From Chlorokybus atmophyticus (taxonomy: Eukaryota > Plantae > Mesostigma and Chlorokybus algae), in NCBI GenBank assembly GCA_009103225.1, contig RHPI01003156.1:226537-290536 (forward strand): a stretch of DNA of 64,000 bases, read 5' to 3'. A program made the translations under genes and the position numbers. Under the pieces are notes generated by a model, which worked only from the letters and a program-made list of their open reading frames with translations, ran no database searches and had not been told where the DNA came from. Shown piece after piece: positions 1 through 59,400 of the stretch; position 1 is the first letter of the stretch, and each line of letters begins with the position of its first letter.

Positions 1-217
1 GTGCGTCCAGCTGCGTGCACACTTGCATGCATGGTGTGGGTCGTTCTACACAATAATTTGAGCATTAGTTGTGTGTTCTTGCTGCACATACACATCATTA
101 CACACGCATTGGCTTGTTGCACCAGCCGCGCGTGTGCTCGTGTGTGCGCGCGTGTGCGCGTGAGTGCATCTGTTACAGGGACCTCACCTTGTAGTGTTGG
201 CCCTAACCTTTGTGGCA

Positions 218-922
218 ATGGCTGAGCAAGAGCATACAGCAAGAGAGGAGGTATCTTGGGGCAATGATGTTGCTAAGACCACCCGACAGCTTACCACTGT
301 GGTTGCCACGTTGTGTGAGCAGGTAACAGAGTTAAAGCAACACGAGGCCAACATAGCTCACTGGCAACGGTCAAGTGACATCGTTGACTGTGCAATCCCA
401 AGTAAGGGACATGTTGGTGCATCTGTTGATGCAAGTGTACAGAACCACCGAGAGCGTAAGCGTAGCCATGAAGCACAGCTCTGTGAAGCTGAAGCTGATG
501 CTGCTCGGGGCCATGCTCTCATGTGTGAGGGACATGAAGAGAGCAAGAAGCCATGTATACAACAGAGATTGTCAATGGCTAGCTGCTCTGTGGACGTTGA
601 TACGCAATGTGCTTTCAGTGACTTGATGTCACGCCTTCCCCAACCATGCAATTTCGATGTGTGGGAGAACAAGTTGGGTGTACAAGTAGATACTCAATTC
701 ATGCAGCACGACTGTGCAGGCAAGTGTGTCTTGCTCAATGCACCTGTTGACGAGTTGTCAAACATGCTCAAGCACTATGTAAATTGCAAGAGCAAGAGTG
801 CGCACAACACAAGTGCATGCGTGGTTGTACCCAAGCGTCCTGGGTTGAAGACCCGCTTTGTTAAAGGCATGCAGGTCCTGGGAGAGGTCAAGCTGGGTAA
901 GGGGCAGATGCGTGTCGTGTGA
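218..922 (+). CDS. Copy A ORF1: coiled-coil-like N-terminus plus Dam-like N6-adenine methyltransferase-like domain
   Basis: Open frame MAEQEHT...MRVV*. Contains FDVW...FMQHDCAGKCVLLNAPV...LKHYVNCK...NTSACVVVP, which aligns by eye to the D-F...DW-G...NPPF...LVVP-W pattern of retroelement MTases. Paralogous to the domain at 5700-6030. Confidence 0.6.
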   Translation: MAEQEHTAREEVSWGNDVAKTTRQLTTVVATLCEQVTELKQHEANIAHWQRSSDIVDCAIPSKGHVGASVDASVQNHRERKRSHEAQLCEAEADAARGHALMCEGHEESKKPCIQQRLSMASCSVDVDTQCAFSDLMSRLPQPCNFDVWENKLGVQVDTQFMQHDCAGKCVLLNAPVDELSNMLKHYVNCKSKSAHNTSACVVVPKRPGLKTRFVKGMQVLGEVKLGKGQMRVV

Positions 923-1234
923 CCTTGCATTCAGATGGGCACAATGTTGCGCCCACTGTTAGCTCTGTTTATGATGCATTAAGTACAGATGTCTTATGTT
1001 CTTTATTGAGTGCCATGCAGATGAGGGCTGTTCGCCATGGAGCTCAACCTCTTCTAGTGCTCGTCCGGCCAGTCTGTAACGACGACACTTCCACCTCAGT
1101 TGGTGAGACCGGTGGCAAGCCACCAGACACGGCCCTTGAAGGTCTGTTGTCTAAATTTTCTGATGTGTTTCAAGCTGAACTGCCTGCATTGCCACCTAAG
1201 AGGGACATCTGGCATACGACCCCTTTAGAGTCTG

Positions 1235-3052
1235 ATGCGCAGCCTCCGTTTAGACCCGTGTATAGGCCGAGTGTATAGACCAACCTTGTCGAGAAGACAA
1301 GCGAGGTGGGCTGAGTACTTGTCTAGATTCAACTTTATCTGGGTTTACAAACCAGGGAGAGTGAATGTGGCAGACCTTTTGAGCCGTTCGCCATTGCTGT
1401 TGGCAGTGACAACACGTGCACGTGCACGAAACCAAGGGTGGGCACAAGCAAGTGATGCTAGTGCCAGTACTTTCGAGTTGCCATCTGTGAATGAGCAAGT
1501 TGTCAATAAGACACCAGTGGCAACAAAGATCAGCGAAATGCCAACTGAGCTCGAGAGAGCAGACAGTGAAGCACCATTGGTAGTGCACGAGCCAAGTGGG
1601 GAGGACCCAATGGCCATTGATGTGGAAGACATTTTACAGCGAATGCCTAGTGCTTATGCACTTGACACATGGTTTGTTGAGTTGCTAAAGCAGGCAGACA
1701 ACAAGATCACTTGTCACAAGAGCCTCTGCTACAGTGAGGGCAACTTGATAGTGCTAACTGCACTCGGCTTGAGGCAAAAGTGTCTGTTTAAGGCACACAT
1801 TTTCGTGTACAATGGGCACATGGGAACGGCAAAGACCATCAAGCAGCTGCAAAGACAGTATTGGTGGCCGAGCTTGGGTGCTGATGAACCTAAATATGTG
1901 GCGTGTTGTGACACTTGTCCAAGAGACAAGGCCTCGCAGAGGAAGCCAGCAAGGTTGTTGAGGCCCTTGGCTATTCTCAGCTATTACTATGAGAGTGTGA
2001 GCATGGATCTGATCACAGATCTACCTGTGACAAAGAAGGGACACAATGCTATCGTTATCTTTGTTGATCGCTTGACCAAGATGATCAGATTTAGGCTCTG
2101 TCGCACAGACTTTTATGCGCAAGAGTTTGCGTTTGTCTTTGTGAAGTCGGTGTTTAGATCACACGGTGTACTCAAAGAGTTGGTGTCTGACCGTGACCCC
2201 AACTTTGTGAGCCAGTTTTGGCAGGCTGTGTGCCGGTACTTGGGGACTAAGCAGAGCTTGAGCACTGCTTACCATCCACAGAGTGATGGACAGACGGAGC
2301 GCGTTAATCAGGTGTTGGAAGAAGTGCTACGCCACTACACGTCACCTAGGTTCGATGATTGGGATGTGTATCTGCCACTTGCTGAGTTCGCTGTGAACAA
2401 TGCATGGCATGAGTCGCTAAGAAGCACTCCTTTCTATCTGAACTACGGTCGTCATGTGTTGACACCCATGTCTCTAAATGTTGAGCCATTCAGCAAAGTG
2501 CCGATGGCTAAAGACTTCACAGAGAGCATGCATGCCTCGTTGGCACATGCAAAAGATTGCTTGAGAGCAGCACAAGACAGGCAAAAGATGTATGCCAACA
2601 GGCAACGTAGGCCTGGAGATGAGCTCCAAGTTGGAGATCAAGTGTTGTTGAGCTCGAAGAACGTTCAACTCAAAACAAAAGGGGTACGTAAGTCGCTACC
2701 ATTCCGCATCACCGACAGTGTTGGTGACCTTGCCTTTCGGTTTGACTTGCCGAAGAGCATGCGAGTACATGATGTGTTTCATGTAGCACTGCTGAAACAG
2801 TACAAGAGTGACGGTCCAGTGCAACCCCCTCCCCCTCCGGTTGAGGTTGAGGGCGATCTCGAGTATGAGGTCGAGGCCATTGTTGGCAAACAGTTCAGAA
2901 AGTACAAGAGGAACTTTTGGATCCAATACTTGGTGAAGTGGCTTGGTTATGGCGAAGAGCATAACACCTGGGAGCCGAAAACCAACTTGGCAACCTGTGC
3001 TGCCTTGTTGGAGGAGTTTGAGAATGAGCTCAACTCAACAGGTGCCACTTGA
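1235..3052 (+). CDS. Copy A integrase plus chromodomain (open frame that starts in the RNase H C-terminal tail)
   Basis: HHCC (AHIFVYNGHMG...CDTC), DDE core (SMDLITDLP, LVSDRDPNF, QTERVNQVLE) and chromodomain (YEVEAIV...YLVKWLGYGEEHNTWEP). No stops over 605 codons. Confidence 0.93.
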   Translation: MRSLRLDPCIGRVYRPTLSRRQARWAEYLSRFNFIWVYKPGRVNVADLLSRSPLLLAVTTRARARNQGWAQASDASASTFELPSVNEQVVNKTPVATKISEMPTELERADSEAPLVVHEPSGEDPMAIDVEDILQRMPSAYALDTWFVELLKQADNKITCHKSLCYSEGNLIVLTALGLRQKCLFKAHIFVYNGHMGTAKTIKQLQRQYWWPSLGADEPKYVACCDTCPRDKASQRKPARLLRPLAILSYYYESVSMDLITDLPVTKKGHNAIVIFVDRLTKMIRFRLCRTDFYAQEFAFVFVKSVFRSHGVLKELVSDRDPNFVSQFWQAVCRYLGTKQSLSTAYHPQSDGQTERVNQVLEEVLRHYTSPRFDDWDVYLPLAEFAVNNAWHESLRSTPFYLNYGRHVLTPMSLNVEPFSKVPMAKDFTESMHASLAHAKDCLRAAQDRQKMYANRQRRPGDELQVGDQVLLSSKNVQLKTKGVRKSLPFRITDSVGDLAFRFDLPKSMRVHDVFHVALLKQYKSDGPVQPPPPPVEVEGDLEYEVEAIVGKQFRKYKRNFWIQYLVKWLGYGEEHNTWEPKTNLATCAALLEEFENELNSTGAT

Positions 3053-3291
3053 GAGCGTGTGCTCAGAGCTACTAGTGCTCAGCCTGGAGGAGCATGTGCA
3101 CATGCCCACATCATCTTCATGTAACATACCAACACCGCATGCACGGGTACACAGTACCAGAGTTGGTTGTTACTCCCACGACTTGCACTACTTTCACGTG
3201 AAGCACTGCCACTCAATTAGGCCTGGCCAGCCTGGCTGCGGTTTGTGCGGGACTAGTGTCCCACCCTTTTGCAACGCGGTCGTTGCAATGC

Positions 3292-3304
3292 AAGTGGGGA
3301 GAAA
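3292..3304 (+). promoter_or_regulatory. Polypurine tract of copy A
   Basis: AAGTGGGGAGAAA directly before the TGTCAC LTR start. The equivalent AAGTGGGGAGGAA lies at 9823-9835. Confidence 0.85.
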
Positions 3305-4326
3305 TGTCACGCCCACAGGGCAGGCAAAAGTCATCCTCTGTTCCTTACTTATGTGGTAAGTAAGATGAGACCAAGTGGGGACCCACACGCAAGCGTGTGT
3401 AGTGCTTGTGGGCGTGCTCTCATGTAGGTCTGCTCTAGAGCCTGTGCGGCCTTGAGCATGATGAACTACACAAGGCATGATGGCAAGCACAGGGCTGATC
3501 ATGGCCGATGAGACATCATGTGATGTACAGAGACATATGTGTGCATATGTGTGCATATGTGTGCATATGTCCGCATATGTCCGCATGTGTATGCATGTGT
3601 TTGCATATGTGTGCACATGTACGCATATGAGAGCATATGCGTGCATGAGAGGTATGTACTAGATGTATGCATGTATATGCATGCATGCGCATATGTGTGC
3701 ATATGCGCGCATATGTATGCATAAGGATGCATATGTATGCATGAATATGATGTCCTAGGCTGATGTAACCAGCCAAAGACGTTCACAACGTCCAAGGATG
3801 ATGTGTGTGATGTCCTAGGCTGATGTGACCAGCCTAGGGGCGTTCACAATGTCCGAGGCTGATGTGTGATCAGTCTTGGGCGTTGATAAGATGTCTTATG
3901 GCTGATGTGGCTACTCCTAGGCATGAGTATAGGTCAACGCAGCTATGACAAGGCAAGTAGCCTTGGACATGGTTGTTCTAGGTTGGAGAGCAGCAAAGAG
4001 GGGGTATATGAACGGCCTCAACAAGTGTTGAGGCAGCTCAGCATGTGCATACTCTTGCGTGTGGGGTGCCTAGTTCAGTTGTTCAAGGGGCTCTCCCTCT
4101 TATCCCAAGTGGGTTGTAGTGTCCGTAGCAGCCTTGCACATAAGTGGGGTGTGCTTGAGTGTGTGTGAGCTAAGTGGACGGTTTGTTGTGCATCCTCTCC
4201 ATCCCGTTGCGGTGCTGGTCATTCCTTCAACAATGTGCTGCACCGTGGTATGTTGTGAAGAAGTTCTTGTGCGTGTGCACAAGTATGTGACATACACGAG
4301 CAGGTAAGTGTGTGTCTCACGTTACA
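3305..4326 (+). repeat. LTR shared by copies A and B (1022 bp)
   Basis: Starts TGTCAC after the PPT and ends GTTACA. The 3' portion closely matches 9836-10698. Contains a CATATG satellite (~3533-3745) and a ~60-bp tandem duplication (~3749-3868). Confidence 0.92.
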
Positions 4327-4642
4327 TTGGACTTGGAGCTTGTTTTCAAGCCTTGCATGCTTGCCCATCAGCTTGTACACTTGCTACACGGTGCGTGTGT
4401 TGCATTCTTTGCTTGCACACGCTACATGGCAGTGTTTGCACGCTGATTGTGCATGTAGTTGGTTGCACCAGCTGCACGCACACTTGCATGCACGGTGTGG
4501 GTTGTATTCACGCTGGTTTGCGCACTGGTTGTGTGCATTTTCGTTGCATTTTGCTGCGTGCATAGCTGGACTTGTGCGCGCGTGTGTTTGTTGAACACTA
4601 CACTCATTACGTGCTTGTGCACGAGCAGATTTTCACTCGACA

Positions 4643-5631
4643 ATGACTTATCCGAATGCCAACGCACTCGCGGCCCAGATGATGGAGCAGCAAAACCAGG
4701 TGCAAGCCATGGTCACGGCCAATGCCTCCATAAAGGAGCAACACGAGCAGCAGCTAGCCAAGATGGCAATAGCAAACACCCACAAGATGATGCCACGCTT
4801 GGAGTTCTTCGCCGGTGCCAATGATGGGAAGGGCGAGGATCTTGGTGTTGCCGTGCGTGACCGGCTTTCAGGTTGTAAGCGTGTGTTGCATGCCGCTGAG
4901 GTATTGCCTGGGCTTGAGGCCAAAGCGGTGTCGCTTTTGGCATCCTACTTGCGGGGAAGTGCTGCCCGCATGTGGGAAGGGGCTTCCCCACGTCTTGAGG
5001 CTGTTGGCAAGGATGTCGCAAGCCTTGACGTGTTTGAGACTGCTATGTTGCAGGCCTACGGGGGTGTGAACCCGTTACAAAAGGCGCGTGACAAGTTGAG
5101 ACGCTCGAAAGTCAAGCCCTATCAGTCCATTGAGGACTTCACTGTCGACTTCGAGTTGGTGTGTGCCAAAGTTGGCCCCGACATGCCCTTGTCAGAGGTA
5201 AAGAAGATGGACAAGTACTGGGCGGCTTTGCCTGAGGATACGGCGAAGCAATTGACCTTCATGGAGGGCCTGGAGTCCTTCACGCATGCTGATTATGACT
5301 TGATGAAGCGCACGGCTGTGCAGTATGACAACAGCCAGCGCATAATCAACCAGGCACGGAAGTTGGCCATTGTTGCCAACCAGCCCTTGAGCTCGACCAC
5401 TCCCGCTATGGAAGTGGCAGTGGCAACAACAGTCGCAAGCGCGGCCGCCCAGACGGCAAGGGCAAGCAGCCCTTTCAGCCAGGCAACAAGAAGCGCGCTA
5501 CCAGCATCCCTGGAGTCAGCGTGGAGCTGAGGAATGCACGCTTCAAAGCCGGACTTTGTCTCAAGTGCGGGGAGAAAGGCCATCACGTGGCGAACTGCCC
5601 CAACCCCTCCAACGACAAGCCTGTCGCATAG
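4643..5631 (+). pseudogene. gag: gag of copy B with CCHC zinc knuckle (one frameshift near 5400)
   Basis: Retrotransposon gag-like ORF from 4643. In the shifted frame, CLKCGEKGHHVANC lies at 5557-5598 and ends TAG at 5629-5631. Confidence 0.85.
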
Positions 5632-8600
5632 AAACTCGGGGTGGAGAGCTGTTCTACTAGTAGCCCTGTACAGCCAGCTTGCCAACTCTGTAAGTTGCTT
5701 GATGACTGTTGGCAATCCACATGCTTCCCTGTTGACATGCGATGTTGCTGTGTGGGAAAACGATGTGGGTGTGCCTGTTGACTCCGAATTTCTGATGCAT
5801 GACTGTGTGAGCAAGCAAGTGCTGCTTAATGCGCCCTTTGACAAGTTGTCAACGGTGCTCAAGCACTATGTTGAGTGCAAGATTAGAAGCCCGCATAACA
5901 CAAGTGCATGTGTCATTGTGCCCGCGTATAGAGGACCATGGTCGTCCCTTATAAAGGGTATGCAAGTCATTCAGGAGATTGACAAGTCACAAACTGGGAT
6001 AGGGTGCTATGTGCGTGTCATGTATGACCCGCCTGTTCTCCACTGCGGAAATCACTTGGACCTTACATGGTTGTTCAAGGCGTCAGTGGCACGCATACCA
6101 GCTACTCTGATGATAGGTACTAGTACACCGAAGAACTTTATAAGTGAGTCTCTGGTGCGGCGTCTTGGCATTCATGTTGAGAAGGCAAGTGAGGCAGTGA
6201 CCTCACTAAATGAGCATGAGATCCCAGTCAAAGGGTCCGTGCATCTGTCTTTGCGTGTGCAAGGCTATCATGCTCAACTGAGGTTCTTGGTTGTGCCAGT
6301 TGAAGTACCAGGTGTTGACGTCATTCTTGGTGCTCGCTGGGAGCGTGCTAATGGCCTGCGCACAGATGCAGACACTGGCCTTTGCAGCGTGCGCAAAGGG
6401 CGAGGGCGTGTGACCCTGAGAGCTGAAGGGTGTGATATCATGCCCTCTACTCGTGGTGACACATCAAGTGATGTGTTCCCTCTGTTGTTTAATGCCATGC
6501 AGGTGAAAAGAGCTGTGCGCAGAGGTGCTGAACCTCTTCTTATCCTCGTCAAGCCTCTTGCCAACAATGATGGCACCACTCCACCCGATAAGACTGTTAG
6601 CAGCTCATAGAACAATGCACTTGACGCTCTGCTGCATGAGTATTTTGATGTGTTTCAAGCTGAGCTGCCTTAGTTGCCTCCTGAGCGGGAAGTGTGGCAC
6701 ACTATCCCTCTCGTATAGGAGGACAACCTCCATTTAGGCCTGTGCATAAGCTAAGTCCAGCTGAGTTTGCGGACATGGAGAGGCAAATCAGGGCCTTGCT
6801 TGCGAAGGGATTGATTGAGCCAAGTAGCTCTCCCTTTGGAGCACCCATTCTGTTCGTACTTAAGAAGGATGGCAGGCTGCGCATGTGCGTGGACTATAGG
6901 GCCTTAAACAAGCTTATCATTAAGAATAGGTATCCGTTGCCAAGGATAGATGATTTGCTCTATCAACTGAGCGGGGCCTCACTGTTCAGCTCCTTGAACT
7001 TGATCAGTGGGTACCACCAGATCCGGATCACACCGAAAGATGTGCCCAAGACAGCGTTTAAAACGCGTGTGGGACACTTTCAGAACAAAGTGCTGCCATT
7101 TGGGCTGATGAATGCGCCAGCTACCTTCTAAGCTATGATGAACCGTGTGTTTCACAAGGTGATTGGGAAGACAGTACTTGTGTACTTGGATGACATTATG
7201 GTCTTCAGTAAAGACCCTGAGTCACATGTTGCACATGTGCGTGAGGTCCTTAAAACGCTGCGTGCGAACAAGTTCTTTGCGTACATGCCCAAGTGTGAGT
7301 TTGGGAAGACGGAACTTAAGTTCTTGGAGCACATTGTAAGCAAGGAGGGCGTGCGCCCTGACCCCAAGAAGGTTGCTAAGGTCCAAGATTGGCCCGCACC
7401 CAAGAACGTGCATGAGCTGCGAGCATTCTTGGGGCTAAGCAACTATTTCCGGAAGTACATTCTTAGATACTCATCGCGAGTTGCTCCTCTCACAAACTTG
7501 CTACGTGACAAGGTTGTGTAGAAGTGGGGACACGTGCAACAGGTTGCCTTTGACTCTATTAAAGAGGCTCTGGTGACAGCATCTGTGTTACAGTTGCCAG
7601 ACTTCACCAGGCCCTTTGAGGTGATTAGCGATGCATCTAGATGGCACGGGAGCTGTGTTGCTTCAGGGTGGACACCCTCCCGCGTACTTGAGCAAGAAGT
7701 TCTCTGCTGCTGAGAGAAACTATACCACAACTGAACAAGAATTGTTGGGAGTGGTCCATGCGCTACAGGAGTGGCACTGCTATCTGGAGGGGGTGGAAGG
7801 TGGGTTCACGGTGATTGCCGATCACAACCACTTGTTTTCTTTCAGACCCAACCAACCCTGTCCCGAAGACAAGCAAGGTGGGCTGTGTCTTTGTCGCCTT
7901 TCAACTTTACTTGGGTGTATCGTCCAGGTAGGGTAAATGTGGCAGATCCCTTGAGTCGCTCGCCTTTGTTATTGGCAGCAACGACACATGCACGTGCACG
8001 CAGTTGAGGGTGGGCACAATCTGATGACACAAGTGCAAGTACATCAACGCAGCTAGCAACATGTGAGTTGCCAGTTGCAAGTGAGGCAGCGGTGATGCAC
8101 CAATGGTAGCTTCCATTGCAAGTGGGGAGGACCCACTGGCTGTTGATGTTGAAGACATTGTGGCACGTCTACTACGGCTTATGCACTTGACAACTGGTTT
8201 GCCTAGCTGCTCAAGCAAGGAGACGACAAGATCACTTGTCACAAATGGTTGTGGTACAGCGAGGGCAAGATGATTGTGCCAGATGCACTCGGACTTAGGC
8301 AAGAATGCTTGTTTGAGGCACACAATGTTGTATACAGCGGTCACATGAGCATGACCAAGACCAACAAGTTACTGCAGCGACAGTACTGGTGGCCGACATT
8401 GGTTGCTGATGCAACCGAGTATGCAAAGTTGTGACACTTGTCAACGTGACAAGGCCTCACACCGCAAGCCAGCAGGGCTACTTAAGCCGTTGGCTATCCC
8501 AAGCTATCAATGGGAGAGTGTGCGCATGGATCCAATTACAGATCTGCCCGAGACAAAACAAGGGCATGATGCCATCATTGTCTTTGTTGATCGGTTGACC

Positions 8601-9587
8601 AAGATGGTCCGGTTTGAGCCATGTCGCACAGATGTGAGCGCGCAAGAGTTTGCGTATGCTTTTGTGAACACGGTGTTCAAACTGCACGGTGTACCAAAAG
8701 AGTTAGTATCAGACCGTGATCCCAGGTTTACCAGTCAGTGACAGGCTGTGTGCCAATACTTGGGAACAAAGCAGAGCTTGAGCACAGCTTACCAACCACA
8801 GAGTGATGGACACACGGAGCGTGCAAACCAGGTGCTTGACGACATGCTGTGCCACTACACGTCACCCAGGTTTGATGACTGAGATGTGCACCTTGCATTG
8901 GCCGAGTTTGCTGTAAACAATGCATGGCAAGAGTCAACGCACAGCACTCCGTTCTTTCTCAACTATGGTCGTCATCCGTTGACACCAATGTCTCTGCAAG
9001 TTCAGCCATTTAGCAAAGTGCCAACAGCTAGAGACTTTACAGAGCAAATGCATGCTGCATTGGCAAGTGCCAATGACTGATTGGTAGCAGCCCAAGATCT
9101 GCAAAAGATGTATGCTGATCGGCAGCGCAAGCCTGGTGCTGGTCTTGAAGTAGGAGACAAGGTCTTGCTGAGTTCTAAGAACATTAGACTCAAGACCATT
9201 GGTGTGCACAAGCTTCTGCCCAGGTGGCTATGGCCGTTCACAATTACAGCAGCTGTTGGTGACCGTGCCTTTAGGCTTTAACTGCCAAAGAGCATGCGGA
9301 TCCACAGTGTGTTCCACGAGGCACTGTTGAAGCCGTACAGAAGTGATGGCCCAGTGCAGCCTCCTCCACCTCCAGTTGAGGTAGAGGGAGACCTCGAGTA
9401 TGAGGTCGAGGCAGTTGTTGGCAAGAGGTTTCGGAAGTACAAGAAGACCTTCCGCATTGAATATCTTGTCAAGTGGCTTGGTTATGGCGAAGAGTATACC
9501 ACCTGGGAGCCTATTTTCAACTTGACAAACTGTGCTGACAAGTTGGGTGAGTTTGAGAGTGAGCTCAAATCCACAGGTGCCACTTGA
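5632..9587 (+). pseudogene. pol: pol of copy B: Dam-like MTase-like domain, aspartic protease (catalytic Asp lost), RT, RNase H, integrase, chromodomain
   Basis: NAPF at 5828-5839; LMIGTSTPKNFIS protease remnant; [25 protein letters not shown] and YLDD (~7183); RNase H DAS...TTTEQELL; integrase MDPITDLP and SDRDPRF; chromodomain YLVKWLGYGEEYTTWEP. Several in-frame stops. Confidence 0.93.
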
Positions 9588-9835
9588 GAGCATGTGCTCG
9601 GGTTGCAACATAGGTGTTGTACAAACACGTGCAACTTTCTCTTCTATGTGACATGCCAATACGCGCGCACTGGTACTTAGTATCAGAGTTGGTTGTCACT
9701 CCCGCGACTTGCATTTTGTTTTATTCATAGTGTGCAGTGGTTCAGCAGGCTTGGCCAACCTGGCTGGCAATCATCGTGCGGGGCAATGAGCTCCATTGAT
9801 TGCAACATGGGAGTTGCAATGCAAGTGGGGAGGAA

Positions 9836-10698
9836 TGTCACGCCCAAAGGGCTGGTAAAAGTCACTCTCATGTTCCTTACTTATGTGGTAAGTAAGAAGA
9901 ACTAAGTGAGGATCCCGTATAGTCAAGTTGCGTAGTACTTGGCATATGTGCTCATGAAGTTAGTTCTTGTGCACTTAGTGTGCAAGGGCGTTGTAGCTAC
10001 ATATAGGCACTGTCTACTAACAAGCACAGAGCTAGTCGGTGTCATATGTCGGCATGTATAAGCATATGGTTGCATATGCATGCATGTGTCCGCATATGAG
10101 TTCATATGTGCGGATATGAGTGATGTATGCATGTGTATGCATATGTCCGCATATGTATGCATATGTATGAGGTCCTGGACTGATGTGACCAGCCTTGGGC
10201 GTTCACAATGTCCGAGGCTGATGTGTGATCAGTCTTGGGCGTTGACAAGATGTCCTAGGGCTGATGTGGCAGCTCCTAGGCATGAGTATAGGTCAACGCA
10301 GCAATGACATCCATGTCCAAGGCAAGTAGCCTTGGACATGGATGTTCTAGGTCGGAGCAGCAAAGAGGGGGTATATGAACGGCCTCAACAAGTGTTGAGG
10401 CAGCTCAGCATGTGCATACTCGACTCTTGTGTGTGGGGTGCCTAGTTCAGTTGTTCAAGGGGCTCTCCCTTTTATCCCAAGTGGGTTGTAGTGTCCATTG
10501 CAGCCTTGCACGTGAGTGGGGTGTGCTTGACTGTGTGTGAGCTGAGTGGAGGGTTTGTTGTGCATCCTCTCCATCCCGTTGCGGTGCTGATCATTCCTTC
10601 AACAAGGTGCTGCACTGTGGTATGTTGTGAAGAAGATCGTGTGCGTGTGCACAGGTATGTGACATACACGAGCAGGTAAGTGTGTGTCCCACGTTACA
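9836..10698 (+). repeat. 3' LTR of copy B (863 bp)
   Basis: TGTCAC...GTTACA, preceded by the PPT at 9823-9835. Homologous to 3305-4326. Confidence 0.92.
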
Positions 10699-12506
10699 CA
10701 GTGGGAGTATTCGCAAGGTGTATGTCCAATCCTACCATGGAGCATTGGAAAGCTGCAGTTGGAGTTCTAAGATACATTTGAGGGACTACATTTGTTGGGG
10801 TCTTTTTCGCTAGAGAAAAGACTGGACTTAAAGGCTTTTGTGATGTTGACTTGCTAAAGATCTGCACAACCGCAAGTTTATATATGGATTCGCCTTCATG
10901 CTAAATGGTAGCTCGATGAGTTGGAGTTCTAAACTTTAAGCTACCGTGGCAGTCTCAACTGCTGAGGCTGAGCACATCGCTGCGTCCCATGCTATAAAGA
11001 AGCAATGTGGCCGAGAGATTTCATGACTAATCTGAGCTATGAGCCAAGCTACGTGAGGTTATACTGTAACGGGAACGCCATTATACTGACGAAGCACCAA
11101 GTGGCTTTTGTTCGTGCTAAGCACATTGATGTGGTGCATCATGTTGTGCGCGTGAGAGTTGCAAGGATGAAGGTGCGATTTAAGTTTTGCAAGACTGAAG
11201 ACATTTTGGCAAACGTCTTCACCAAGGTCCTTCCTCTACCCAAGTTCAAGACATGCTACTCTAGACTTGGCATTTGGTAACTGCCTGCACGGGAGTGTTA
11301 GAGAAGACCCGCCTGATCTTAAGTTAATGGAATTAAACTCGCCTTGGGTTTATTCCATCATTTATGAATATGAATAGCTTGGTTTGAAACTCGATTTATG
11401 TGGACAACCGCAAGTTTATATCTGGATTCGCCTTTATGCTGAATGGTAGCTCAATGAGCTAGAGTTATAAACTGTAGGCTACTGTGGCAATCTCAACTGC
11501 TGAGGCTGAGCACATCGCTGCGTCCCATGCTATGCCGGAAGCAAGGCGGCTGAGAGTTTTCATGACTAATCTGGGCTATGAGCCAAGCTGTGTAAGATTA
11601 TACTGTAACAACCGGAGTGCCATCAAACTGACGAAGCACCAAGTTGCTTTTGTTCGTGCTAAGCACATTGATGTGGTGCATCTTGTTGTGCGCGTGAGAG
11701 TTGCAAGGATGGAGGTACAATTTAAGTTCCGCAAGACTGAAGACATTTTCGCGAACGTCTTCACTAAGGTCCTTTCTCTATCCAAGTTTAAAACATGCTG
11801 CTCTACACTTGTCATGTTGTGACTGCCTGCGTTGGAGTGTTAGAGACCCGCCTAATCTTAAGCATAGTTACAAAGTACGCAATACGCGTACTAGTACGTG
11901 GTATGCAAAGTACGCATGTTTTTTCGTACTTTTTCCACAGTACGTCGGCCGGTACGTATTTCATATCTTGTTCATGCGTACGATTGATAAACATTGGTAT
12001 TGTTTGTGATGCAATATATGTGCTAACAAGTGGTGGGCAACTCGTTGTACATTATAATGACATCATCACACACTGCTTGATATGATGTGATATGAATGGA
12101 GTCATTTATCAATCGTAATGCTTTTGCATAACATGTTATTACATGACATCACACCACTTTTAAAAAGATGCTTTATTACTTGCAGTGCCGATAGATGAGG
12201 TGGGTCGCACGGCGCTGCCGCGACCTACCCGCCGCGTGAGGTCGCGCGCGCGGCACGTCACCAAAGGCCGTTTGCTGCGCTATCGGCGGTTATTTCCGAA
12301 AAATGACCTATTGTAGCCCAATAACGTACGATTTCCGGTACTTTCAACGTATTATCAATAACTGCTTGCTGTACGCGTACTATTGCGTATTATTTTGCCA
12401 AAAGTCGCGTACTTTGTTGCTATGATCTTAAGTAAATGGAATTAAACCCGCCTTGAGTTTATTCAATCAGTTATGAAATAGCTTGGTCTCAAACTCGGTT
12501 TATGTG
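10699..12506 (+). mobile_element. Ty1/copia remnant (RT end, RNase H, LTR start) with a ~538-bp tandem duplication
   Basis: CMSNPTMEHWKAAVGVLRYI, VAVSTAEAEHIA and RAKHIDVVHH...ANVFTK are copia RNase H motifs. PPT-like GGGAG then TGTTAGAG at 11296. The unit from 10867 repeats from 11405. Confidence 0.88.
11863..12424. mobile_element. Non-autonomous hAT-like DNA transposon (MITE), 562 bp
   Basis: 18-bp TIRs (CATAGTTACAAAGTACGC and the reverse complement of GCGTACTTTGTTGCTATG, 16/18 match). 8-bp TSD ATCTTAAG at 11855-11862 and 12425-12432. The upstream duplicate has a single ATCTTAAG. Confidence 0.92.
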
Positions 12507-49189: not shown

Positions 49190-52100
49190 TCATAGAAGTT
49201 TAGCGCGTGCTTGTTCCAATACGGTCAACTCCTGTTGTAGTGACTGCAAGTAATCGGCTGGTTTTTCTTTGAATTTTGCATGTTCATCTGCCAACTTCTT
49301 CGCCTCTTTCTCTGCAGCTTTCCTCGCTTTTGAAGACAGCGGCTTGCCCTCAACATCAGTTGATGGCAAGCCGGCTTCATCATAATCTTTGTACAGGTTA
49401 GATGCCCTGAGAGCCTCATCGGGCGCAGCGGCAGCCTTGGACCATCTCGCAATGTCCTTAACCAGTATCTGTATCTTGTTCTCAATTTTCTTCAACTGCC
49501 GAAAGCAAGATATGAGTCCAAGGCATTCAATGCAATGGCCAGACAGTCACTAACAGTTACCTACACAGAGCGTACCTGAGCCTGTGCTGCTTGGCGGAGC
49601 TTGTCATCGCGCTCTTTCTTGAGCAGCGCAGGGTCTTCCAGTTTCCAGACAGAGGGGCTGTCTCCCCTGTCTTCCAGCTGGACACCCAGTTCAACCATTG
49701 TCTCATCCCTGACCCTATCGCATGCGGCAAGGATTGCTTGCTTGGGTGCATCCGCGCGAGCTGCAAGACGAACAGTATCTCGAAACGCAGCAAACGCATC
49801 TATGAATGGCGCCACGCTGGCCGCGGAGTGCTGTGCGCCTGCCTCATCATCTATGCCAAACACTTGCAGTATGCGCTTGACAAAGGCCACAACAGACCGA
49901 AGGAGGGGAATGCGAGCTGAGCCTTCGTTGCCTTAAAAACAGAACACATGAGTTCGAGTTTGACACCCCCAAAGGGTAAGAACCCAGTGTACTGCTCAAA
50001 GGGAACTCACCAGCAACATAGTTGTTGGTCTGCTTGACGATCTCAAACACAGCAGTCATGGCACCTGGTGTGTCAAAGTTGTCGCATAAGCGTGCGTGAA
50101 CTTCTTCCTGTGCTGCTGCCAGTGCCTTATGCAATGACTTCTCTGCATCCCTCCAACCCTGCATGCGATTACGATTTGTAGCTTGAAGGCAGTGGTCCTT
50201 ACACAATGGAGCGACTGAAATGAAATTTGACGTACCTGAGCAGCATGGACCTCTGACCCTACAGCCCGAATAGCCACGTCAACATTTTGAAAGAAATTCC
50301 TCAGATACTTGTCTTTGGATAACGCGTCCGCCATGAATGCAGGCCCATAGTTAATGGGCTTGTCCCAATAAGACAGCACAAACAGCAATCGTAGCTGCCT
50401 TGCTGTGTACTCCTGCATCACACATCCAACAATGTTAACACCTCATCCGACACTCCCATGAGCAGAGGTCAACAAGTAAACATGTGTAATGCACACCTGC
50501 AGAGCCTCTTTGATAGTGACAAAGTTCTTGAGGGACTTGGACATTTTGTGGCCCTCAATATGCAGATGACCAGCGTGCATGAAGTAGTCAATCCACTGAT
50601 TGCTGCCGTAATAGGCTTCTGCCTGAGCGAGCTCGTTGTCGTGATGCGGAAAGCGAAGGTCGATGCCTCCGCCATGCACATCAATGCGCTCTCCAACCAT
50701 TACAGACGCCATGGCACTGCACTCGATGTGCCATCCGGGCCGACCCTTGCCCCACGGAGAGTCCCATATGGGTTCACCCGGGCGTGAAGCCTTCCACAAT
50801 GCAAAGTCAGAGGGGTGCTTTTTGGCAGAGTTGGCAAAGTCCCTTTCACCTTCTTCCGCCAGCGCCACGGACCCAACAGCGTGCGGGCAAAGTTTGCCGT
50901 AGGTATGCCCATTGCGGCGGAAAGCAGTCGTGTCAAAGTACACACTGCCCTCGTGCTCATATGCTAAGCCCTTCTTCACAATCTGGGCTACATAGGAGAC
51001 AATCTCATCCATGTACTCGCTAACTCTGGACACCACTGTTGGAGGCTGCACTCCCAAGGCGGCCATGTCTGCAAAGAACTCCGCTTCAAACTTCATTGCA
51101 TGCGCCCGAAAGATAGCTGCATCCGTCAAACTGCTGCCTTCCCGCGCATCCAACACAGCTGCCAACGCATCCCCACCAATCTGTTGACATGATTACACAC
51201 ACAAGATGCTCTCAATGCTTGACTATAATGCCTGACTGCTGCAGCAGCACACTGTCAATGCAAGCACCTGAAGAAGAGCATCAGCATCACTAATATGACT
51301 TGTTGAGTTGCCATTCTCCAAGCGCCTGTCCTCCTCAGCTCGCTTCACTGCATCCTGTCACATGAGATTGAGATTTCTCATCATGACACAGCGTATGAGG
51401 TGTGATGTTTGCACCCACTTGCATGAAGACAGTCTAACAGCCTGGCTTGCAAGTCACGTCCACCTGCGACCATGTAAGCATATACCTGAAATTGTGACAG
51501 CTTGTATGTCTCCTGCATCACGGCCGTGTTTAAATCGTCTTGCTGGCGTACCGATGTTGCCGCAGCCAGTTCTTGAGCCCTGGCAGCTACAACGGCTTGC
51601 TGCTTGGCAGCTGCATCATTGAGCGCCTGCAGTACATCTTGCTTGACCTGCAATGTAGCCCCAAATGAGTAAGCACTACACGTACCAAGGATACTGCAAC
51701 ATGCACGGTCTCAATCTTTCAGCACAGCACGCCCTCCCCCCCCTCCCCCCCCTCCCCCCACGCACACACAAAGAAAAGAAAACAGAAACAGGGAAAACAA
51801 CAAGGAAAACAAAGCAAGCTACTCTGTACAGCGTGCATGCACTGAAGCAACTTACCTGGGAGTACGGCAGATTCTTTTGGCGATATGCATCGAGCAGGTG
51901 GTTTCTGCGGGCTCTAATAATTATTTTGTCATCAATGTCCGTGACATTCATAACATAGAATATGTCATAACCGAAGTAATCCTGCAAGACCGCATGACAC
52001 CACACTGAGCACAACACGCAATCACGCCAGTGGAAGTGACAGCATGGATTGAGGTGCTTACACTCACCTCCATAATACGGCGTACAATGTCAAATGTGAG

Positions 52101-56400: not shown

Positions 56401-59400
56401 AATCTGTTTGATGAAGAGACGCCGCAGATTTTTGCTGTTTGTGGTCGCGGGTCGCGCTCAACACTGCGAATTTTGCGCCCTGGCTTGGCAGTACAGGAGA
56501 TGGCTGTGTCCCAACTGCCAGGTAAGCAGTTTGTTGGTAGAACAGCAACATTGCGAGGTGGCAGTTGACGCGTGTGAGAGATGCATGCCTGTTTACATGC
56601 ACATGTGCGTTCCTGTTCATACGCGGTTGTGCGTTTGTGGCACAATGTCTACGCGTGCGCAAATGCACCTACTTATAGCGGAACTGCTGTCATGAGCCCA
56701 CACATAGCGCATGCACTGACATGAAGCTTACATGTCCTATCACCATGACTGCATTGCCTCACATACGTTGGTTGCAGGCAACCCCAACGCGGTGTGGACA
56801 GTTAAGCGCAGCAATAAGGATGACTTTGATGCGTACATTGTGGTGTCTTTTGTAAACGCTACCCTTGTGCTCTCCATCGGTGAAACCATTGAGGAGGTCA
56901 GCAGTGCATGTCTGCAAGGCGGGTTAGAAGCAGAGGTAGATGGCCTTTAACATTGTCGTGGTTGCAGGTCAGCGACAGTGGCTTCCTAGGAACTACACCA
57001 TCATTGTCAATCTCGTTGCTGGGTGATGATTCCCTTATGCAGGTATGGTTGGACATACAAGTTGATGTTGAGAGATGCTCTACCAGAGTTCGTGTCAAGG
57101 TAGTTGCATCGGGCAAGTTGTTGTTCCACAACTGACCTGTACTTGCTTGCAGGTGTACCCAACTGGCATTAGGCATATTCGGCCAGATCGGCGCATCAAT
57201 GAGTGGAAAGCCCCGGGCAAGCGAACGATACAGCGAGTTGCTAGCAATGCCTGGCAGGTTGTGATCGCATTGACCGGCGGCGATCTCGTCTACTTCGAGC
57301 TAGATGTTACCGGACAGCTGATGGAGGTTGAGAAGAAGGAGATGGGTGTTGACGTGGCGTGCCTCGACATGGCGCCGACTCCCGAAGGTCGTCAACGGAC
57401 GCGGTTTCTTGCCGTGGGCACCTACGACTCAACATTGCGCGTGCTGTCGCTGGACCCCGATGACACTCTATCAGGCCTTGCATTGCAGGCACTCCCCTCG
57501 CCAGCAGAGTCTTTGTTGATTTTGGACAACACCGACAGCAGCGGCGGCATCTTCCTCAACGCCGGCTTGCAGAATGGCGTGCTGCTGCGCACTGAGGTGG
57601 ACGGCATCACCGGGCAGCTCTCAGACACGAGGACTCGCTTCCTCGGCACCAAGCCCCCGAAGATTGTCCCGTGCATGGTGCATGGGCAGCGAGCCATGCT
57701 GTGCTTGTCGTCGCGCCCGTGGATCGGTTACACCTTCCAGGGCCGCTTCACCATGACGCCGTTGTCGTACGACACCCTCGAGCACGCGCACTCTTTCTCG
57801 TCAGATCAAGTTGCTGAAGGCATTGTTGCCGTGGCGAAGGATACCGTGCGTATCATCTCCGTCGAGCGCCTGGGGGAGATGTTCAACCAAACTTCGTACA
57901 AGCTGCGTTACACGCCGCGCAAGTTCATTGTCCACCCCGAACACAGGACTCTCATTATCATCGAGGGCGATCACGGCAGTCTCACCGCGGCTGAACGCCA
58001 GGCAGGTATTCAGTCCGCGAATGAAGCCAGCGGCATCAATGCGGCTTCGGCCAACGGCAACGGCGCAATGGCTGTGGATGGGGGAGAAGGCGGCGCTGAA
58101 GGCAAAGAGGTTTGCAAGCATGATCTTGAGAATGTGATTGCCATTGCAAGCTTGCAAGCTGAGCTCACACTTGATCATGCGTAGGAGCAAGAAGAGGGCA
58201 TGGCCGACGACCAGTTTGGTATGCCAAAGGCTGCAACAGGCAGATGGACCAGTTGCATACGAGTTATGGACCCGCGCACGGGTGAGACAACCAACCTGCT
58301 GGAGCTGGATGGAAACGAGCTTGCCACATCGCTATGCACAGTGCAGTTTCAAAACAGTCAAAACGATCTGGGGATGCTCTTGGCTGTAGGTAAATCTTGA
58401 ACTGTTTGAACTTGAATGCACATTGCAATGTGAGCTGCATTAGCGCGTTGACACTTTTTGGCTCATGGCAGGAACCGTGAAGGACCTGGGATTCTACCCA
58501 AGGAGTTCAAGCGGCGGATTCATTCACATCTACAAGTTTACCGACGAGGGTAGAGGACTAGAGTTGCTGCACAAAACACCTGTGGATGGTATCCCAGCTT
58601 CGCTTTGCCAATTCCAGGTAACTTCATTTGCAATACTTGTTTGATGACTACCACCACCGTCGCATCGTTTACCTGAATGTGCGTGACTGTTTAGGGCAAA
58701 CTGCTCGCCGGTGTTGGGAGCATATTGCGTATTTATGACCTTGGAAAGAAGAAGCTGCTGCGCAAGTGCGAAAACAAGGGCTTCCCGAACCTCATCACCC
58801 AGCTGCACGCCATGGGTGATCGCATATACGCTGGCGACGCTCAAGAGGGCTTCTTCTACGCCAAGTACAGGCGATCAGAGAACCAGATCTACGTGTTTGC
58901 TGACGAGGTGGTTCCGCGCTGGCTCTCGGGCTCGTTGTTAATGGACTACGACACCGTAGCGGGAGCAGATAAGTTTGGGAACGTATATGTCGCGAGGTTG
59001 CCGGCAGAGTTGTCGGAAGCCATTGAGGATGACCCCACGGGCGGGAGGCTGAAGTGGGAGCAGGGCCAGTTGAACGGCGCTCCACACAAGATAGAAGCCG
59101 CTATCGAGTATCACGTTGGTGAGACCATCTGTGCGCTGCAACGGGCCGCTCTCCAGCCCGGTGGCAATGAGGTCCTGCTCTATGGCACCATCCTGGGTGC
59201 ACTCGGTGTGCTCATGCCTTTCACCAGCCGCGAGGACGTGGACTTCTTTCACCACCTTGAGATGCACATGCGGCAGGAGAACCCCCCGCTCGCCGGCCGC
59301 GACCACATCGGCTTCAGGTCCGCGTACTTCCCCGTAAAAGACACCATCGATGGCGACTTCTGCGAGCAGTACGCCGCGCTGTCGCACGACCAGCAGAAGC

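Follow-up and report, generated by a model that had tools for sequence, protein, structure and literature searches.

A trimmed Dam-like domain at the Pol N-terminus of tandem chromodomain Ty3/gypsy elements, probably kept for a role other than methyl transfer

A stretch of 64,000 nucleotides of Chlorokybus atmophyticus DNA (assembly GCA_009103225.1, contig RHPI01003156.1, forward-strand positions 226,537 to 290,536; here called the window, in whose coordinates all positions are given) opens with 10.7 kb made up of two diverged Ty3/gypsy chromodomain elements in tandem, copies A and B. Over positions 1-10700 the array runs in the order internal A, long terminal repeat (LTR), internal B, LTR. 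Both copies carry a conserved segment of ~100-115 amino acids that separates the gag zinc knuckle from the protease. This segment descends from a Dam-type N6-adenine methyltransferase domain, has been cut down to a core that evolved under purifying selection, and is probably catalytically inert.

Layout of the Locus

The copy B segment lies on the + strand in frame 2, within the open reading frame (ORF) 5534-6610 (358 amino acids), and occupies 5738-6034. Its recognizable motifs are (i) CDVAVWEN, a remnant of motif I, at ~5738-5764, (ii) FLMHDC at 5789-5806, (iii) NAPF at 5828-5839, (iv) HYVECK at 5864-5881, (v) TSAC at 5900-5911, (vi) RGPW at 5930-5941, and (vii) YDPP at 6023-6034. The copy A paralogue occupies 611-919 on the + strand, within ORF 164-922, and carries NAPV at 737-748. 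A tblastn search of the window with the copy B segment returns two places only, itself (5747-6055) and 659-889 in copy A, the latter with an E value of 9e-30 and 60% identity over 77 amino acids. The resemblance is far beyond chance, and nothing else in the 5′ regions of the two copies can still be aligned. A preliminary description of this DNA gave the NAPF peptide and its NAPV paralogue at exactly these positions; its limits for the segment, 5700-6030 and 600-922, are in the right place, but the true extent (~5738-6034 in B and ~611-919 in A) runs slightly beyond them.

All other parts of the two elements are likewise on the + strand. The internal parts of A and B share 73-78% DNA identity (~24% divergence). 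Copy A extends from the window start to ~3384 and has suffered an internal deletion: its Dam-like domain ends in a stop and in this deletion, which joins the domain to the RNase H/integrase part. Downstream, a single open ORF of 605 amino acids at 1235-3052 encodes the integrase (H2C2 zinc domain, rve core, SH3) and the chromodomain, with Pfam matches to Chromo (1.2e-16), Integrase_H2C2 (1.7e-14), SH3_Tf2-1 (2.2e-10), and rve (1.6e-07). A tract of 10-bp tandem repeats, CATATGTGTG-like, follows at 3514-3772 upstream of the LTR and has a counterpart in copy B at 10033-10200. The repeats are degenerate, with 17 copies in A and six in B, and in both elements the tract sits between the chromodomain end and the LTR, where a polypurine tract is expected.

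The LTR common to the tandem pair, which is the 5′ LTR of copy B, occupies 3798-4326 and is 91% identical over 545 nucleotides to the 3′ LTR of copy B at 10157-10698, with ungapped blocks of 94-100% identity. It terminates in ...ACGTTACA, followed by TTGG..., a putative primer binding site. LTRs that are 91-100% alike beside internal parts that are only ~76% alike suggest that the array arose when LTRs of different family members recombined, and not through two separate insertions.

Copy B, between these LTRs (~3798-4326 and 10157-10698), begins with a gag ORF at 4643-5530 (295 amino acids), for which Pfam gives no match. A CCHC zinc knuckle follows at 5557-5630 (zf-CCHC, E 5e-4) in a frame unlike those of gag and pol, with a TAG at its end. 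Three arrangements thus meet at 5534-5631, namely gag in the frame of 4643, the knuckle in the frame of 5557, and pol in the frame of 5534, and the TAG of the knuckle ORF lies ~100 nucleotides past the opening of the pol frame. Such an arrangement may be what is left of a programmed frameshift site, or simply decay. Beyond the Dam-like domain, at the start of Pol, copy B encodes an aspartic protease at 6086-6352 (residues 185-273 of ORF 5534-6610; RVP_2 3e-4, Asp_protease_2 1.8e-4), which, read against the DDI1 alignment, has G-T-S in place of the catalytic D-T/S-G and has therefore lost its active site. It is followed by a reverse transcriptase at 6694-7521 in two pieces with a stop between them (RVT_1 8e-15 and 1.3e-10), an RNase H at 7631-7936 (RT_RNaseH 2.5e-19), an integrase at 8249-9281 spread over several frames (zinc domain, core, and SH3 by Pfam), and a chromodomain at 9294-9587 (Chromo 2.7e-15). 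Frame changes and stops are numerous. Copies A and B are dead elements with no present function; given the frameshifts, stops, and lost protease active site, neither is expressed now.

Homology to Dam Methyltransferases

Direct searches with the window copies are silent. A Pfam scan of both copies finds no Dam (PF05869) match even at E<=10, and the gathering score is not reached. A scan of PHROGs with the window domain, a phmmer search of PDB sequences with it, and a word-index protein search with residues 70-185 of the 358-amino-acid ORF likewise give no match.

A profile of the two copies behaves differently. Searched with HMMER against a library of 1.84 billion protein representatives, it retrieves 248 proteins at E<=1e-3 (25 at E<=1e-10), with a best E value of 1e-17. 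In most of these relatives, the domain opens a Ty3/gypsy Pol protein, and Pfam Dam matches many of them. Among the ten relatives scanned first, nine have a PF05869 match (E 4e-9 to 7e-6; six above the gathering score) that coincides with the window-profile match and lies upstream of the protease in Ty3/gypsy Pol, in some cases in a polyprotein that ends with a chromodomain. In alignment A2, made up of 43 short relatives and the two window copies, Dam matches are seen for 18 of the 45 members (best E 3.6e-10), the window copies themselves not being among them. The reverse comparison is strong as well: a hidden Markov model built from the relatives recovers copy B at 1.7e-31 and copy A at 7.7e-30, the latter over profile columns 19-126.

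An hhalign comparison of the family profile, which contains the window copies, with three phage proteins annotated as Dam gives 97.0% probability (E 8.6e-11, 91 columns). In this alignment, NAPF is paired with NPPY, and the strand bearing TSAC..VP corresponds to V-L-x-L-V-P in the phage proteins. When the family profile is run against PDB sequences, only its DDI1-like protease part finds a match, with no chain for the Dam part. With the intact relative P0008 as tblastn query, 81 records match at E<=1, and the matches listed include phage genes whose annotation is Dam or DNA methyltransferase (best E 8e-4). This chain of matches shows that the Pol N-terminal domain of this chromodomain Ty3/gypsy family descends from a Dam-type (PF05869, M.TaqI/PCIF1-like) N6-adenine methyltransferase domain. 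The preliminary description, which had proposed an N6-adenine methyltransferase-like domain in a chromodomain gypsy element from the letters of the window, is borne out by the PF05869 matches of the relatives, the hhalign result, and the class-I methyltransferase matches of the model described below.

Predicted Fold

AlphaFold2 predicts copy B as a five-stranded sheet with flanking helices, with a mean predicted local distance difference test score (pLDDT) of 82.4 that exceeds 90 over residues 50-130. When the model is compared with 48,161 PDB representatives by VIA-align, its best 50 matches are all class-I S-adenosylmethionine (SAM) methyltransferases, with Z values up to 8.4 and coverage of 106-127 of 135 residues. 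Many of the top matches are adenine-N6 enzymes. The Z values are 8.4 for KsgA, 8.3 for ErmC′, 8.0 for METTL5, 8.0 for PCIF1, 7.9 for E. coli Dam, and 7.0 for T4 Dam, and the value for PCIF1 is tied with those of many other methyltransferases. The model of the intact relative P0008 (pLDDT 85) has PCIF1/CAPAM as its top Foldseek match, with an E value of 4.4e-6, a probability of 1.00, and ~155 aligned columns. Structure prediction had been put forward in the preliminary description as a check, with the absence of a methyltransferase fold counting against its proposal, and it is the class-I methyltransferase fold that is predicted. With the Z values of the window model at the border stated for VIA-align and its Foldseek E values weak, the fold supports the homology but does not carry it.

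Trimming and Altered Motifs

Alignment of both window copies to the family profile of relatives locates the changes. Two segments are missing from both: (i) ~8 columns between motif I and the S-F-L segment and (ii) ~16 columns that make up the K-G-x-x-L-F hairpin between the last two strands. The first deletion corresponds to profile columns 46-53 in copy A, while the N-terminal half of copy B does not align to the family profile. The hairpin is otherwise conserved from phage Dam, where it reads G-R-L-x-F, to the eukaryotic elements. In the window family, the domain has been cut down to a five-stranded core. Because the trimming and the motif changes given next are common to two lineages that are ~24% diverged in DNA, they arose in a replicating ancestor and not through decay of single copies.

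The residues of the catalytic pocket are altered as well. The tetrad (D/N/S)-P-P-(Y/F/W) is replaced by NAPF in copy B and NAPV in copy A, with Ala for the first Pro in both and the aromatic residue lost in A. The Trp that precedes the catalytic Asn is Leu in both copies. Motif I reads NFDVWEN in A and CDVAVWEN in B, that is, D-V-W-E-N where the relatives have D-A-C-C-N, and the cofactor-binding half (F-x-L-D-A-C-x-N ... G) is intact in neither copy. The short SAM-binding region and the NAP in place of NPP that the preliminary description had pointed out are therefore real features of both copies.

What both copies keep is nearly all of the residues that are near-invariant across the family: the H, Y, and K, the TSAC strand, VP, GM, and YDPP. 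These largely belong to a eukaryote-specific block, H-Y-x-x-C-K...P..T-S-A-C..V-P, which is 81-99% conserved in the family profile. The catalytic Asn is conserved at only 62% in that profile, whereas the H-Y..K...P..T-S-A...P block stands at 91-99%.

Selection on the Domain

Between copies A and B, the core has a pN (nonsynonymous differences per site) of 0.24 and a pS (synonymous differences per site) of 0.68, giving a ratio of 0.35 (bootstrap 95% confidence interval 0.23-0.52; Fisher p 2e-8). Jukes-Cantor correction brings dN/dS to 0.16. Codon positions 1, 2, and 3 have identities of 0.65, 0.82, and 0.53, which is a coding pattern. In the same pair, dN/dS is 0.23 for the integrase core and 0.15 for the chromodomain. 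These values show that the trimmed core evolved under purifying selection as strong as that on the integrase and chromodomain; neutral evolution of the domain, which the preliminary description had named as grounds for abandoning its proposal, is not what the pair displays.

Catalysis and Function

The reading favored here, with a probability of about 0.58, is that of a trimmed Dam-like Pol module, selected, catalytically inert, and kept for another role. On this reading, the Dam-type domain, reduced to its core in the replicating ancestor of copies A and B, would no longer transfer methyl groups and would have been retained because Pol needs it for something else. The likeliest such roles may be binding of the element's own nucleic acid or of a host factor, or folding or processing of the Pol N-terminus. 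Inactivity is made likelier by the combination of losses, namely the missing hairpin, the shortened cofactor-binding half, the altered motif I, and the lost Trp. The suggestion in the preliminary description that the domain could be catalytically dead can accordingly be sharpened to probably inactive, on the strength of NAPF/NAPV, the altered motif I, and the two shared deletions.

Several points weigh against this reading. Inactivity is judged from sequence only, and copy B retains the Asn, second Pro, and aromatic residue of the tetrad. In KsgA/Erm-type enzymes, which are active adenine-N6 methyltransferases, the tetrad is N-(L/I)-P-Y, and NAPF is also present in three long open polyproteins (P0061, P0129, and P0140). 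We know of no demonstrated non-catalytic function for any such domain. The estimate of selection comes from one sequence pair with 77 alignable codons and synonymous sites near saturation. The link to Dam runs through intermediate relatives, because the window pair alone reaches only 4.6% against the three phage Dam proteins in hhalign, which is not significant. As for the fold, Foldseek gives only weak matches for the window model, the best having an E value of 0.03, and a VIA-align Z of 8.4 lies at the border stated for that tool.

Taken alone, the Ala in second place of the tetrad does not decide the matter. Relatives of at least 800 amino acids have NPPF/Y in ten cases, NAPF in three, and another N-x-P-aromatic combination in four, and the second position undergoes ~49 state changes on a tree of 140 domains that is built on 67 columns and is poorly resolved. 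On this tree, the window copies group with relatives that all have degenerate tetrads, with an SH-aLRT value of only 86, which makes the grouping a lead from a weakly resolved tree. Among Ty3/gypsy Pol proteins with such tetrads, P0037, P0138, P0049, P0048, P0041, and P0029 read HVPS, DLPH, DPPS, DPAP, DTGL, and DAQP, respectively. Their motif I is degenerate too, Pfam Dam is blind to their domain, and their ORFs are open through the protease and reverse transcriptase; P0037, with 982 amino acids, is open through the protease, reverse transcriptase, RNase H, and integrase zinc domain. Such sequences make a non-catalytic life for a Dam-like domain plausible. A broader proposal, that a whole Pfam-invisible branch of retroelement Dam-like domains gave up catalysis (degenerate tetrad and motif I, with a five-stranded core here) and has been selected through its HYxxCK...TSAC..VP block as a module binding nucleic acid or a host factor, is put forward tentatively, at somewhat less than even odds.

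The domain might instead be directed at RNA, as a PCIF1/CAPAM-like module that methylates the cap-adjacent adenosine of the element's transcript or that binds the transcript or RNA polymerase II without catalysis. PCIF1/CAPAM is the best solved-structure match of P0008 and is among the high scorers for the window model (Z 8.0), and one relative matches Pfam PCIF1_WW at 1.9e-5. The methyltransferase domains of DIRS1 elements have been placed in the PCIF1 clade, with transcript binding or mimicry of PCIF1 proposed as their role (Iyer, Zhang and Aravind 2015, PMC4738411), and the best match of P0008 fits this placement. The family is, however, nearer in sequence to phage Dam (PF05869) than to PCIF1, and PCIF1 may come out on top since no closer relative has a solved structure, the Dam part having no PDB sequence match. 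Pfam finds neither the WW nor the helical PCIF1 domain in ORF 5534-6610 or ORF 164-922, and the catalytic version of the proposal runs into the same motif losses as a DNA methyltransferase would. An RNA-directed module is thus unlikely.

A functionless relic on its way to loss is improbable. Its apparent constraint would have to stem from a short period of activity of the lineages or from unrelated constraints on the Pol N-terminus. The dead state of both copies with their many frame breaks, the shortness of the domain relative to that of its relatives, and flanks that have diverged beyond alignment on both sides would suit such a relic. Yet the deletions are common to lineages ~24% diverged, the core has retained 60% protein identity and a pN/pS like that of the integrase and chromodomain, substitutions follow the coding pattern at all three codon positions, and the family-invariant residues have been kept.

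Quite improbable is an active DNA adenine methyltransferase that writes N6-methyladenine (6mA) on the cDNA or LTRs of the element while the integrase chromodomain reads chromatin, and self-marking by writer and reader, which the preliminary description had raised, is unlikely for the trimmed version in particular. The methyltransferase fold, the N-x-P-F of copy B, and the purifying selection are compatible with an active writer, and LTR retrotransposons with a Dam domain (DAM-LTRs) are reported to have higher 6mA and transcription in ichthyosporeans (10.64898/2026.05.21.726589). Against it stand the loss from both copies of the hairpin and of ~8 residues in the cofactor-binding half, the altered motif I and lost Trp, and the missing aromatic residue of copy A. 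Intact eukaryotic DAM domains expressed in dam-deficient E. coli gave no 6mA in the same study (10.64898/2026.05.21.726589), and the DIRS1 methyltransferase domains were judged inactive by Iyer et al. (PMC4738411).

A chance resemblance to methyltransferases in what is merely a gag-pol linker, for which one could cite the absence of direct Pfam, PHROGs, and PDB sequence matches and the low hhalign value of the window pair, is refuted by a significant chain of homology (window to relatives at 1e-17 to 1e-31, relatives to Pfam Dam down to 3.6e-10 and 7.5e-13, family to phage Dam at 8.6e-11) and by fold matches that are exclusively methyltransferases.

Other Features of the Window

Just past the 3′ LTR of copy B, two tandem copies at 10860-11304 and 11398-11846, ~540 bp apart, are 88-90% identical. 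Their ORFs (11005-11280 and 11484-11822) encode a peptide that by eye resembles the C-terminal end of Ty1/copia reverse transcriptase/RNase H, and the region 10860-11850 is probably a duplicated copia fragment. Farther along, the window contains a cysteinyl-tRNA synthetase catalytic-domain exon at 50443-51165 on the − strand (tRNA-synt_1e, E 3.5e-79) and, at 57075-58184 on the + strand, the second beta-propeller exon of an RSE1/DDB1/CPSF1-type protein (E 1.1e-70). With spliced host genes in the rest of the window, the DNA belongs to a eukaryotic nuclear genome.

Comparison with Known Systems

Phage and bacterial Dam proteins of PF05869, such as those of Escherichia phage slurp01 (SCA80294.1) and Acinetobacter phage XC1 (WFD61270.1), share the order of elements with the window domain: an N-terminal helix, the F-x-L-D-A-C motif I, V-W-x-N-P-P-Y/F, a helix, a hydrophobic strand ending in P, the G-R/K-x-x-F hairpin, and a final strand. 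They differ in that the phage proteins are free-standing enzymes of ~150-175 amino acids with NPPY/F, whereas the window domain is embedded in Pol, is ~24 residues shorter, and has NAPF or NAPV. In addition, the HYxxCK...TSAC block is eukaryote-specific, being present in the window domain and not in phage Dam.

PCIF1/CAPAM (PDB 6irv-6is0), whose catalytic motif is NPPF, is the solved structure nearest to P0008 and ranks high among the matches of the window model. Unlike the window domain, it is a cellular cap-specific mRNA adenosine N6-methyltransferase; it works on capped RNA and includes WW and helical domains. Sequence identity between the two is only 12-19%.

For two decades, DIRS elements have been known to carry Dam-like domains. 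The DIRS1-type domains (Goodwin and Poulter; PMC4738411) are of the same family and likewise sit inside a retroelement polyprotein. DIRS elements have a tyrosine recombinase and lack an LTR-type integrase, a chromodomain, and an aspartic protease, whereas the window domain lies between the gag and protease of a chromovirus. Together with the Dam-carrying chromoviruses described next, they justify the caution of the preliminary description that the domain is probably not wholly new.

The closest known system is that of the DAM-LTR retrotransposons, which include a 'Chlorophyta DAM-chromovirus-like' lineage and for which the idea of a writer plus a reader has been put forward (Fernandez-Moreno et al., bioRxiv 10.64898/2026.05.21.726589, May 2026). 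Both are Ty3/gypsy LTR elements with an integrase chromodomain and a Dam-type domain inside Pol. Copy B has the full architecture of gag, zf-CCHC, Dam-like domain, protease, reverse transcriptase, RNase H, integrase, chromodomain, and flanking LTRs, and copy A retains the Dam-like domain and the integrase-chromodomain part. The relatives of the window domain are polyproteins of just this type, among them P0078, P0098, and P0140 with Dam, protease, reverse transcriptase, RNase H, integrase, and chromodomain. Further traits attributed to DAM-LTRs are raised 6mA and transcription on the insertions and a host that encodes AMT1. The differences lie in the domain itself. Membership among DAM-LTRs was defined by hmmsearch with a DAM domain model at E<=1e-5, and the Asn-Pro-Pro pocket was reported as preserved (10.64898/2026.05.21.726589); the window copies have Asn-Ala-Pro (NAPF/NAPV), have lost two segments including the conserved hairpin, and, with no Pfam Dam match at E<=10, fall short of that threshold. 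Copies of the window type would therefore escape the screen of the preprint.

Four other relatives of the window domain, P0081, P0086, P0122, and P0129, are full-length Ty1/copia polyproteins of 1517-1639 amino acids with a PF05869 Dam domain between gag and protease (E 7.5e-13 to 3e-8, above the gathering score). Their other domains are Retrotran_gag_2, Pol_BBD, gag_pre-integrs, rve, and RVT_2. The preprint never mentions copia (10.64898/2026.05.21.726589), and Dam-carrying copia elements may so far be undescribed.

The comparison with DAM-LTRs bears on the recent question of why many retroelements carry a phage-type adenine methyltransferase domain. In the window family, selection preserved a part of the domain other than the catalytic pocket, which suggests that its conserved role may not be DNA methylation. 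A Pfam-based screen would overlook the trimmed version, suggesting that published DAM-LTR counts and host distributions are underestimates. DAM-LTRs have been stated to be absent from Streptophyta (10.64898/2026.05.21.726589). If the present reading is true and the host is a streptophyte alga, the plant lineage would not lack DAM-LTRs, and their proposed connection with host 6mA would need another look.

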